From Macrostomum lignano (taxonomy: Eukaryota), in assembly GCA_002269645.1 (NCBI GenBank), contig NIVC01000815.1, positions 237,902-301,901 of the forward strand: a stretch of 64,000 bases of DNA. Direction: 5' to 3'. The first letter of the stretch is position 1, and the number at the start of each line of letters is the position of its first letter. Shown here in pieces: positions 16,346 through 18,477 of this stretch. Under the pieces are notes generated by a model. The model made no database searches. It saw only the letters and a list, made by a program, of their open reading frames with translations, and was not told the DNA's origin. A program made the translations under genes and the position numbers.

Positions 16346-17087
16346 AGCCTGATTTCAGATGAGGACGCCACTCTAATCAGTGCAATTAAAGACTTTGTAA
16401 TCCGATACAGAGCCAGTTTAAGCAGCAAACCCGGAGGCTCAATGACCGAGATCGATAGAGCTTCTATACGAAGGGTTAAATTTTTTGGTCAACACTTTGT
16501 CGTTAAACTCTCTCTCTTTTTGAGTCCACTGCTTAACCTGCAATTTTACAATGGGTAATTATACACCCCACAAACATTGGCGTCGGAAATTGCTCAATCT
16601 GACATTGCTAGCTATTTAGTTGAGAAACCGGATGGGCAGGCCTTGCTTGCGTCAGTGTCTCTGTGTGCCAATAGTCAAACAGCCCCATAGCCTTGTCCTA
16701 CTGCCGACTGATGCAATCTATTGACTGACGCAATGAGAGCCTGTTTCAAACACGGCGCCGTTTTGCTTGCGTCTGGGTTTCGCATATTCGGTCGCCCTTC
16801 TCCGGTGATCGATTGGTCGATGGTGGATGGCGGAGCTCAGCGTCCCTGCAATTACGAGCTACCTGCCTGCGAGCTCAGTTGGCGCTGATGAGGGCGCTGG
16901 GAGGCTGTGCCTGTCAAGCAAGTTGCCCAACAGAAGCTCAGGGGAGCAACCGAGTCAGGGTTTGAGGATTCCGCAATCATGATGTCCGGGTCAGCCGCGA
17001 CTCTGATCCGATGGACTGATTTCAGCCAGCCTGTGAGCATCCCAGCGCATGCTGCAGTAATAAGATTGATTGCTGGCCTGCGTCCAG

Positions 17088-17540
17088 TGTGTCTGTCTGT
17101 CTATCTGTCTGCGTGTCTATCTGTCTATCTGTCTATCTATCTATCTATCTATCTATCTGTCTATCTATCTATCTATCTATCTATCTATCTATCTATCTAT
17201 CTATCTATCTATCTATCTATCTATCTATCTATCTATCTATCTATCTATCTATCTATCTATCTATCTATCTATCTATCTATCTATCTATCTATCTATCTAT
17301 CTATCTATCTATCTATCTATCTATCTATCTATCTATCTATCTATTTATCTATTTATCTATCTATCTATCTATCTATCTATCTATCTATCTATCTATCTAT
17401 CTATCTATCTATCTATCTATCTATCTATCTATCTATCTATCTATCTATCTATCTATCTATCTATCTATCTATCTATCTATCTATCTATCTATCTATCTAT
17501 CTATCTATCTATCTATCTATCTATCTATCTATCCATCTAT
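17088..17540. repeat. (TATC)n microsatellite
   Basis: More than 100 near-perfect units. Confidence 0.98.
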
Positions 17541-17676
17541 CCAAATGCGGTACATTTTGCACTTAGGTTATCAGTAAGCAAGCTTCTAATTGAGACTTTA
17601 TCAAGATCTGTCTCCCCTGTTGCAGATAACGGCAGCTAAGCGCAGTGTCTCCCTGCAGCAATCAGGCCAGCTCAAA

Positions 17677-18477
17677 TGATTGATTACCGAGCGCATTCGG
17701 CGGCAGGCGCGCTGAAATCATTGCGGACCGTCTTGTTGCCAGGCCGGTGTGGGGGGGGGACGTCTCCCGCTTTTAGCGAGCAGAGCGGAGGCGATGTCGT
17801 ATCAGAAAATGGACATTCTTTCTGCATCGCAGCGAGTCCTGAAATTTCGCGAGCAGACAATATTTGCGTCGGGGCCGGTCTTAGCTCTGGGGCTGCCTTC
17901 TTAAAAAGCTTCGGCTCTAAACGATTGATTACTAACAGGCAATGTCTGCTGTTTTTAGTTTCAAAGTGAATGAGGCTGGCGCTGGCGGTGGCGGCGCCTT
18001 GGAATTTCTGTGTGAAGTTCTCCGACTGTCACGCTGTACGGGGAGGAGACGCGCGGACCGCTTCTTAACAATGCGAATCGGGGACAAGGAGGCGCGGACC
18101 GCTACCAAATTGATGGATTGATTTGGTTTTTACCTGCGCCTGCGCTGCCAAAGTGTGTGTGCGCGTGTGTGTGTGGTGTGTGCGCCCGAACTCCTCCTTT
18201 GCCTTCGGATTGAACTGCAAAGGCCTTTTTTTATCGGAGCCTCAGATCAATTGGGGCTGGGTTCTTATTCTTATTAGAAAGCAGAAATTGCTAGAAGCCG
18301 ACGCAGAAGCAGACTGGCCCCAAAGTGGAAGTTTCGATTCTTTCTTTAACTCTCTCTCTCTCTCTCTCTCACTCTCACTCTCGCTCGGCGCTCCCTGAGA
18401 CTGCCTGCCTGCCTGCCTGCCTGCCTTCCTGCCCGCCTGCATGGCCTTCCCATCCCGCTCTGGCCAGTGATGGATGA
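17677..18477 (+). promoter_or_regulatory. Candidate Hox1/PBX/MEIS autoregulatory enhancer
   Basis: TGATTGATTA (17677), TGATGGATTG (18111), TGATGGATGA (18468) and CTGTCA (18026); near-matches at 17063 and 17922. Confidence 0.45.

Follow-up and report, generated by a model that had tools for sequence, protein, structure and literature searches.

A same-strand cluster of labial-class PBX-HOX sites 3' of Hox1 in Macrostomum lignano as a candidate autoregulatory enhancer

The single-copy DNA located 3' of the Hox1 gene of Macrostomum lignano contains three exact class-1 PBX-HOX sites (TGAT[T/G]GAT) within 800 bp, all of them on the plus strand, and this same-strand clustering exceeds chance and is not explained by base composition, tandem repeats or segmental duplication. 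The adjoining gene is a PG1 Hox gene that contains a hexapeptide, and the island in which the sites lie can plausibly be read as a cis-regulatory module that responds to Hox1/PBX, in the simplest case as a positive autoregulatory enhancer through which Hox1 maintains its own expression, a reading to which a probability of about 0.4 can be assigned. Coordinates refer throughout to the window, that is, the whole 64-kb stretch of DNA that was analysed.

Hox1 is encoded on the minus strand by two exons. Exon 1 (35759..36692) begins with an ATG at 36692 and is followed by a GTAAGT donor after 35759, and exon 2 (24073..24434), with a predicted acceptor position, codes for the PG1 homeodomain and ends with a stop codon at 24075-24073. 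The best matches of this homeodomain in protein searches were labial/Hox1 proteins. A search of protein collections with the full Hox1 protein gave homeodomain-level matches only and no Macrostomum relative, exact look-ups of both exon ORFs matched no record, and no description of the expression or function of M. lignano Hox1 was found in the literature searched. Upstream of the homeodomain there is a hexapeptide-like motif of the W-M type (FKWM, within PPFKWMEIKR; 35807..35784, minus strand), and its FKWMEIKR stretch bears out the statement of a first-pass annotation of this DNA that the local Hox1 keeps a PBX-binding hexapeptide. Because the gene lies on the minus strand, the exact sites are situated 5.6-6.4 kb 3' of the stop codon, in line with the distance of about 6 kb first proposed. 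The sole minus-strand AATAAA between the stop codon and the site cluster (23408..23413, about 0.66 kb past the stop) is likely the Hox1 poly(A) signal, suggesting that the cluster is outside the Hox1 mRNA.

The three exact sites are TGATTGATTA (17677..17686), TGATGGATTG (18111..18120) and TGATGGATGA (18468..18477), which agrees in position and strand with the first-pass annotation, and all three satisfy TGATNNATKR, the stricter PBX-HOX consensus that has been published (PMC3261376, PMC4489388). The 18111 site is overlapped by a second GATTGATT at 18116 and is immediately preceded by two copies of GA[C/G]GCGCGGACCGCT, 41 bp apart (18048..18103, plus strand), and the 18468 site is inside a short palindrome (18451-18476). 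Three further related sites accompany them: a KR-type site with a central CG, TGATCGATTG (16806..16815), in the left half of the island, and two near-sites with one mismatch each, AGATTGATTG (17063..17072, with A for T at position 1) and CGATTGATTA (17922..17931), the latter having AAAYGATTGATTAC in common with the 17677 site; both near-sites had already been reported at these positions. The six sites are all on the plus strand, with start-to-start spacings of 257, 614 (188 without the microsatellite described below), 245, 189 and 357 bp. The 16806 site, together with a CTGTCA at 16911, falls just to the left of the interval originally delimited. Regarding their class, the exact sites carry the class-1 core TGAT[T/G]GAT expected of a PG1 element (class definition in PMC8374599 and PMC8846413) and have a hexapeptide-bearing PG1 Hox gene in cis. 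The core preferred by class-1 Lab/Pb-Exd is TGATTGAT (PMC8374599, PMC8846413), and the Hoxb1 enhancer oligonucleotide is GGGGTGATGGATGGGCGCTG, with the core TGATGGATGG (PMC7706710), to which the 18468 site is identical at 9 of 10 positions; the reference motifs initially invoked agree with this literature, both for Hoxb1 and for the Lab/Pb-Exd preference.

The main competitor of the enhancer reading, to which a sizeable probability short of even has to be granted, is a chance cluster in a neutral, non-functional spacer between tandem arrays, spotted near Hox1 by a motif-primed reader. It is favoured by the counts for the whole window, in which TGATKGAT is not enriched (11 observed vs 9.75 +/- 3.4 in dinucleotide shuffles). 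Eight of these occurrences are outside the cluster, six of them inside minisatellites (39521, 40172, 51877, 52439, 52624 and 53183) and two in unique DNA (25184 and 48003, both on the minus strand), so that the background of one other site (48003) given by the first-pass annotation was an undercount. Its expectation of about 0.05 sites holds for one 800-bp stretch (0.04-0.05 sites under order 0-2 models of the island, a value that rules out local composition as the source of the cluster), but takes no account of the scanning of the remaining window. When at least three same-strand sites within 800 bp are sought over the 37.3 kb of non-repeat sequence, with the span and the exact motif degeneracy fixed post hoc, after the data had been seen, the probability of the 8-mer cluster is 0.003-0.007 by Markov simulations and 1-2e-3 by Poisson scan, and 0.46% of equally degenerate 8-mers cluster likewise. 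For the 10-mer TGATKGATKR, whose only occurrences in the window are the three exact sites, the Poisson scan gives P 2-5e-5, and empirically 7 of 16,384 10-mers of equal shape (0.043%) do as well, the remaining six being located, judging by their coordinates, mostly in the CAG-rich exon 1 of Hox1 or beside tandem arrays. Extrapolated to the whole genome, the 0.043% rate per 37 kb would yield a handful of such clusters in non-repeat M. lignano DNA through chance. A chance origin is opposed by these low probabilities, both from models and empirical (1e-3 to 7e-3 for the 8-mer and 2e-5 to 4e-4 for the 10-mer), by the presence of six related sites on one strand and by the KR extension, found in 3/3 exact sites of the cluster and in 0/8 of the other TGATKGAT sites; in its favour count the post hoc definition of span, degeneracy and near-matches, the loose spacing of the sites and the low positive predictive value of motif-only prediction, since PBX-HOX motifs alone, even if conserved, have little power to predict hindbrain enhancers (7/29; PMC4489388).

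The surrounding DNA was considered as a source of the sites as well. The unique island spans 16.35-18.69 kb, 5.6-7.3 kb 3' of the Hox1 stop, in a window of which tandem arrays make up 42%, reflecting an extremely repeat-prone genome. It is divided into two halves by a (TCTA)106 microsatellite (17116..17541), which forms no part of the motif cluster, and its right half (17542..18684), a single-copy segment, lies between this array and a minisatellite of 100 units of 30 bp that borders the island on the right (18685-21695). The island is single copy as far as the window and a second M. lignano version of the locus (NIVC01003359.1, 98.2% identical) extend, and within this scope it is probably not a transposon copy; the second version ends at about window position 13.6 kb, some 3.5 kb short of the interval first delimited. 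The sequences that flank the six sites are mutually unrelated, indicating that the sites were not born by duplication, and only repeats of 13-16 nt with no common period are present, which also discards a segmental duplication or a cryptic repeat. In support of chance, GATTGATT consists of two tetranucleotide units, and tetranucleotide arrays abound in this genome, although the neighbouring (TCTA)n array gives GATA on the opposite strand and is thus not the origin of the sites. A coding gene or an RNA gene in the island was rejected too: its concatenated six-frame ORFs (about 1,000 aa) have no homologues among the 5.8 billion proteins of a collection in which M. lignano is represented by transcriptome-derived proteins, and Rfam gave no match at the gathering score in the whole window and only noise in 16300-18800 (15-20 bits vs the 50-100 needed). 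The cluster is therefore above chance expectation and not a by-product of repeats.

The MEIS/PREP hexamer CTGTCA is present twice on the plus strand, at 16911..16916 (95 bp from the 16806 site) and at 18026..18031 (79 bp upstream of the 18111 site), the second copy being the one originally indicated. The 1.9 kb of unique DNA would be expected to contain about 0.9 copies, so that the two present correspond to a chance-level frequency, which again suits a chance cluster. Both KR sites concerned have their CTGTCA at no more than 100 bp, inside the published range and beyond the favoured 40 bp (PMC4489388). The PBX-MEIS composite TGATTGACAG is absent from the island. An enhancer of the retinoic-acid response element (RARE) type, as found 3' of other PG1 genes, was also rejected, since 16347-18685 contains no RGKTCA direct repeats with a 1-5 bp spacer and only two isolated half-sites.

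The three mollusc Hox1 loci that were compared (Patella, Haliotis and Mizuhopecten, 52 kb each) contain one, two and four scattered TGATKGATKR sites, respectively, with none in the 3' 10 kb of any locus and no cluster anywhere in the loci. Such clusters are, therefore, not routine at Hox1 loci, and the chance explanation can point to the lack of support from molluscs, although the retention of a cluster is not expected over such a distance, which makes this result weakly informative about deep conservation. Taken together, the autoregulatory enhancer proposed by the first-pass annotation stands as a candidate, backed by a PG1 gene with a W-M hexapeptide, class-1 sites, their fit to the KR consensus and a non-chance clustering, and weakened by CTGTCA at chance frequency, loose spacing and the missing 3' cluster in molluscs.

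If the island is an autoregulatory enhancer, Hox1 would contact PBX through its FKWM hexapeptide, and Hox1-PBX heterodimers would occupy the class-1 composites TGAT-TGAT and TGAT-GGAT at 17677, 18111 and 18468. The weaker sites at 16806, 17063 and 17922 could assist heterodimer occupancy, and a MEIS/PREP protein may join the complex at the CTGTCA motifs at 16911 and 18026. The occupied module would then act over a distance of about 18-19 kb, spanning the gene body, on the promoter of Hox1. We infer binding, enhancer activity, the target gene and the dependence on Hox1 and PBX.

The island could also be a real TALE-type cis-regulatory module that works with another PBX partner, in cross-regulation or on a different target gene instead of in Hox1 autoregulation, which we consider unlikely. 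The partner could be another Hox protein, PBX itself in a homodimer or a PBX-MEIS/PREP complex, and the target could be the convergent gene at 0.8-6.3 kb, given that the island is placed between this gene and Hox1. The cluster statistics apply equally to such a module, PBX also binds TGATTGAT-type cores together with further class-1/2 partners (PMC8374599), and in flatworms PBX and PREP contribute to axial patterning independently of Hox (PMC2858555, PMC3886891). However, the three exact sites all belong to the PG1/PG2-specific class with G at position 6, and flatworm Hox2 has been reported as lost (PMC4815179), leaving Hox1 as the natural remaining class-1 partner; in addition, the nearest developmental regulator is Hox1, and the missing PBX-MEIS composite does not favour a complex of that kind. 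It is very improbable that the motif acts at the RNA level, as repeated UGAUUGAU/GAUUGAUU in a plus-strand non-coding transcript ending at AATAAATAAA and a T-rich tract (18603-18650): the common strand of the six sites and the canonical-looking plus-strand poly(A) signal shortly downstream of the last one would suit it, but the island has neither an Rfam family nor a protein or ORF in the 5.8-billion-protein collection, AATAAA is over-represented across the window (63 vs 28.5 expected) and a transcript covering every site must cross the 426-bp microsatellite.

PG1 autoregulation through PBX-HOX sites has been documented in flies, vertebrates and one nematode and, to our knowledge, in no spiralian. 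On the most far-reaching reading, which is less likely than not, the island would be the first Hox autoregulatory enhancer identified in a spiralian, in which Hox1-PBX feedback would have been kept despite the dispersal of the Hox genes and the loss of Hox2, and rebuilt as a dispersed, same-strand homotypic cluster in 3' position rather than as a compact 5' element. If this is true, the PG1-PBX loop would be a circuit inherited from the bilaterian ancestor, with freedom to drift in position and architecture, and the question is raised of whether the loop survives after the break-up of the Hox cluster. If the cluster is due to chance, it calls for caution, because even a clustering of motifs as improbable as P of about 1e-4, beside the right gene, would then not suffice. 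RNAi is feasible in M. lignano, transgenic reporter lines are available (bioRxiv 10.1101/2024.04.28.590365) and a whole-body single-nucleus RNA+ATAC atlas exists (PMC11398382), which, with a candidate that is short and well delimited, makes the ancestry of the Hox1-PBX loop in Bilateria directly testable.

Among the known systems, the vertebrate Hoxb1 r4 element (b1-ARE; Popperl et al. 1995, as cited in PMC7706710 and PMC8846413) contains several labial-class bipartite PBX-HOX sites, as does the island. In both cases the linked gene is a PG1 gene that encodes a hexapeptide, and the b1-ARE requires PBX and acts with a nearby MEIS/PREP CTGTCA, a hexamer of which the island has two copies. The b1-ARE is located 5' of Hoxb1, with tightly packed repeats and a close MEIS/PREP site, whereas the island is 3' of its gene, its sites extend over 0.8-1.7 kb and its CTGTCA motifs are 79-95 bp away and at chance frequency. 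The vertebrate element is, moreover, deeply conserved among vertebrates and functionally proven, while the island is a candidate. In the Drosophila labial element (lab550, lab48/95), the Lab/Exd site, which we take to be TGATGGATTG, is identical to the 18111 site and presumably has an Hth CTGTCA nearby. The class-1 preference of Exd-Lab for TGATTGAT is another shared trait (PMC8374599, PMC8846413). The fly enhancer differs in having a single main composite site, with an Hth site close beside it, and in lying 5' of lab. In the syntax of vertebrate enhancers, TGATNNATKR has a CTGTCA no more than 100 bp away (Parker et al. 2011, PMC3261376; Grice et al. 2015, PMC4489388), and two pairs in the island conform to it (16806/16911 and 18026/18111). 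This syntax was derived from non-coding elements that are deeply conserved, and it is strongest where the gap does not exceed 40 bp, in contrast to gaps of 79 and 95 bp here. The 3' retinoic-acid response elements of Hoxa1/Hoxb1 are, like the island, a few kb 3' of a PG1 gene, but consist of DR2/DR5 nuclear-receptor half-sites instead of PBX-HOX sites.

Streit and colleagues are said to have described in 2002 (listed in PMC4051164) an autoregulatory enhancer of ceh-13, the labial/Hox1 gene of C. elegans, that depends on ceh-20/PBX. Here a PG1 gene regulates itself through a Hox/PBX site in an animal that is neither fly nor vertebrate, as is proposed for the island, and this argues for an ancient loop. 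The worm enhancer differs from the island in coming from a nematode and not from a spiralian, and it consists of one short Hox/PBX element, located upstream of ceh-13. Known PG1 autoregulatory elements are, in general, 5' of their gene and have either a single site or sites packed into about 150 bp. This compact architecture, typical and not strictly defining of PG1 elements, contrasts with the much looser spacing in the island, of 245-434 bp, or of 189-614 bp when all six sites are considered. With its class-1 sites next to a PG1 gene, the candidate would plausibly add to the already known kind of PG1/PBX autoregulatory element.

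The island, a stretch of single-copy DNA at about 16.35-18.69 kb of a window of genomic DNA from the flatworm Macrostomum lignano, lies between a 16-bp minisatellite, which stops at 16346, and a minisatellite of 100 30-bp units (18685-21695), and is divided in two by a (TCTA)106 array (17116-17541). It contains three exact copies of the PBX-HOX motif TGATKGAT on the plus strand, at 17677 (TGATTGATTA), 18111 (TGATGGATTG) and 18468 (TGATGGATGA), as well as near-matches at 17063 (AGATTGATTG) and 17922 (CGATTGATTA) and a CTGTCA at 18026, all as described in the first-pass annotation, which missed a further site of the extended type, ending in KR (16806, +, TGATCGATTG), and a second CTGTCA (16911, +) just to the left of its interval. 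The six related sites share one strand and are separated from their neighbors by 189-614 bp; comparison of their flanks revealed no shared similarity and no internal periodic repeat was found in the island, and they are thus independent occurrences. The island is a candidate Hox1/PBX autoregulatory enhancer, a reading to which we assign a probability of about 0.4. A CpG-rich 15-mer, GA[C/G]GCGCGGACCGCT, is present in two copies 41 bp apart (18048-18103, +) immediately upstream of the 18111 site.

Hox1, the sole homeobox gene of the 64-kb window, is encoded on the minus strand. Exon 1 (36692..35759) codes for a Q/A/S-rich N-terminus and a hexapeptide-like motif, PPFKWMEIKR (35807..35784), and ends in a consensus donor (AAAG|GTAAGT). 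The intron (24435-35758, about 11.3 kb) is mostly occupied by four minisatellite arrays (25499-26724, 27152-29373, 30030-30871 and 32391-33340), and exon 2 (24434..24073) contains the PG1 (labial/Hox1 paralogue group) homeodomain and the stop codon. Its boundary at 24434 corresponds to the best acceptor and is provisional, because the homeobox exon is immediately preceded, in the same reading frame, by a (CAG/CAA)n tract (24465-24657, -) coding for about 30 glutamines; the stop-to-stop ORF spans 24657..24076 (-), and use of an alternative acceptor could add this polyQ stretch. The closest database proteins are labial/Hox1 of molluscs, brachiopods, phoronids and others, with homology restricted to the region of the homeodomain; none of the matches is a Macrostomum relative. 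Below the stop codon the minus strand has a single AATAAA (23408-23413), which places the probable end of the mRNA about 0.66 kb past the stop; the site cluster, 5.6-7 kb past the 3' end of the coding sequence, is therefore likely to lie outside the transcript. No second homeobox was detected in the 27 kb upstream or the 24 kb downstream of Hox1, and the flanking ORFs are non-Hox, which fits a dispersed arrangement of Hox genes and the Hox2 loss reported in flatworms, including Macrostomum (PMC4815179).

Tandem arrays, belonging to 25 or more different micro- and minisatellites, make up 26.7 of the 64 kb (42%), the largest being 48764-53940 (38-bp unit, 137 copies), the 30-bp array bordering the island, 27152-29373 (36-bp unit, 62 copies) and 38909-40803 (31-bp unit, 60 copies). 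Two long overlapping ORFs of 949 and 884 aa without a Pfam domain occupy 812-6282 (+); the first of them, 812-3658 (+), shares 99% identity with BOX15_Mlig006135g2, a hypothetical protein of M. lignano (NCBI). Over window positions 1-6748, the unique DNA of the contig encoding that protein (NIVC01003359.1) matches at only 98.2% identity, and its tandem arrays differ; the contig thus appears to be a second copy, a haplotype or another assembly rather than the same sequence. A 435-aa ORF without Pfam match (45241-46545, +), which lies in divergent orientation some 8.5 kb 5' of the start codon of Hox1, is a possible unannotated gene, and a degenerate, frameshifted reverse-transcriptase fragment (57570-58812, -; RVT_1, E = 9e-8, YADDLALL motif) is most likely a dead LINE-type retroelement.

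The strongest competitor of the autoregulatory reading is coincidence, to which we attach a substantial though minority probability. TGATKGAT is not enriched across the window (11 against 9.75 ± 3.4 in dinucleotide shuffles); the background previously reported, one other site at 48003, does exist but is incomplete, as the window holds eight further TGATKGAT, six of them variant units of two minisatellites. Outside the arrays (37.3 kb) there are five sites, three of them in the cluster, and at least three same-strand sites within 800 bp arise there with P = 0.003-0.007 (Markov simulations, orders 1, 3 and 5). With model-derived rates, a Poisson scan puts the 8-mer cluster at 1-2e-3, with or without the island in training, and in a model-free control on the same unmasked sequence 0.46% of 8-mers having one two-fold degenerate position cluster likewise. 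From the composition of the island itself (orders 0-2), 0.04-0.05 sites would be expected, close to the 0.05 originally estimated, so local base content is not the cause. Functional PBX-HOX sites fit a stricter consensus, TGATNNATKR (PMC3261376; canonical motif in PMC4489388), found 14 times in the window; its class-1 (Labial/Hox1-type) subset, TGATKGATKR, occurs three times, precisely at the three exact sites, and the KR extension is present in none of the eight others. The scan probability of this extended cluster is 2-5e-5, and only 7 of the 16,384 motifs shaped NNNNKNNNKR have three same-strand matches in 800 bp, most of the other six, to judge by coordinates, being located next to tandem arrays or within Hox1 exon 1, which is CAG-rich. 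We conclude that the clustering is non-random, at a level of roughly 1e-3 to 1e-4 before span and degeneracy, both chosen post hoc, are allowed for. If the existence of a PG1-PBX loop in M. lignano, located inside the window, is given a prior of a few tenths, the display of three exact class-1 KR sites by such a module a low probability, and chance a probability of 1e-4 to 1e-2 once forking paths are taken into account, function and chance weigh about the same, with a modest edge for function.

A genuine TALE-site module with a partner or target other than Hox1 is unlikely. The core TGATTGAT is preferred by class-1 Hox-Exd complexes, those of Labial and Proboscipedia (PMC8374599, PMC8846413), and the flatworm loss of Hox2 makes Hox1 the natural class-1 partner. 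A plus-strand RNA motif, a reading based on the single orientation of all sites and on AATAAATAAA followed by a T-rich tract just past the last site (18603-18650, +; resembling a plus-strand poly(A) signal), is very improbable; AATAAA is over-represented throughout the window (63 against 28.5 ± 5.1 expected).

Other identities of the island were rejected. It is non-coding, as six-frame ORFs totalling about 1,000 aa had no match among 5.8 billion proteins; it has no Rfam family match as a structured RNA, no second copy of it exists within the window or NIVC01003359.1, and it contains neither a DR of RGKTCA (retinoic-acid element) nor a PBX-MEIS composite site. Nor can the sites have been seeded by the adjacent microsatellite, in which GATA is on the opposite strand.

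Besides the class-1 core, the autoregulatory reading is favored by the HOX1-PBX gel-shift oligonucleotide of the Hoxb1 enhancer (GGGGTGATGGATGGGCGCTG; PMC7706710), one base apart from the 18468 site, and by the involvement of PREP and PBX in flatworm axial patterning (PMC2858555, PMC3886891). CTGTCA lies within 100 bp of two KR sites, in the range of published enhancer syntax (PMC4489388), although the gaps (79-95 bp) are outside the favored 40 bp; its two copies in 1.9 kb (about 0.9 expected) amount to chance frequency, which counts against the reading. So does the finding that, in vertebrates, PBX-HOX motifs, even conserved ones, predicted hindbrain enhancers in only 7 of 29 cases (PMC4489388). 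At three mollusc Hox1 loci (Patella, Haliotis and Mizuhopecten yessoensis; 52 kb each) class-1 KR sites number 1, 2 and 4 and are scattered, without any cluster; such clusters are therefore not a routine property of Hox1 loci, which favors the reading, but nothing at these loci points to an ancient 3' element, which disfavors it. The four M. yessoensis sites (9804, 18389, 22233 and 28450 of the extracted locus) compare with about 1.5 expected; one of them is the exact Hoxb1 enhancer decamer, TGATGGATGG, about 190 bp ahead of the point where the annotated gene begins, and two further copies of this decamer fall within the annotated gene range, presumably in the intron.

The literature searched holds no account of how Hox1 is expressed in M. 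lignano. Two congeners, M. cliftonense and M. hystrix, have genome assemblies, and a single-nucleus RNA+ATAC atlas is available for M. lignano (PMC11398382); transgenic reporter lines and RNAi also exist for this species (bioRxiv 10.1101/2024.04.28.590365).

If real, the island would be the first PG1 autoregulatory element in Spiralia, with an unusual dispersed 3' architecture. Known PG1 autoregulatory elements are compact and located 5' of the gene, whereas the candidate sites are spaced by 189-614 bp, which weighs against it. Its membership in this family is not established, although it has the sequence features: as in the Hoxb1 r4 element, the fly labial element and the ceh-13 enhancer, class-1 PBX-HOX composite sites, here predicted from sequence, adjoin a PG1 gene.
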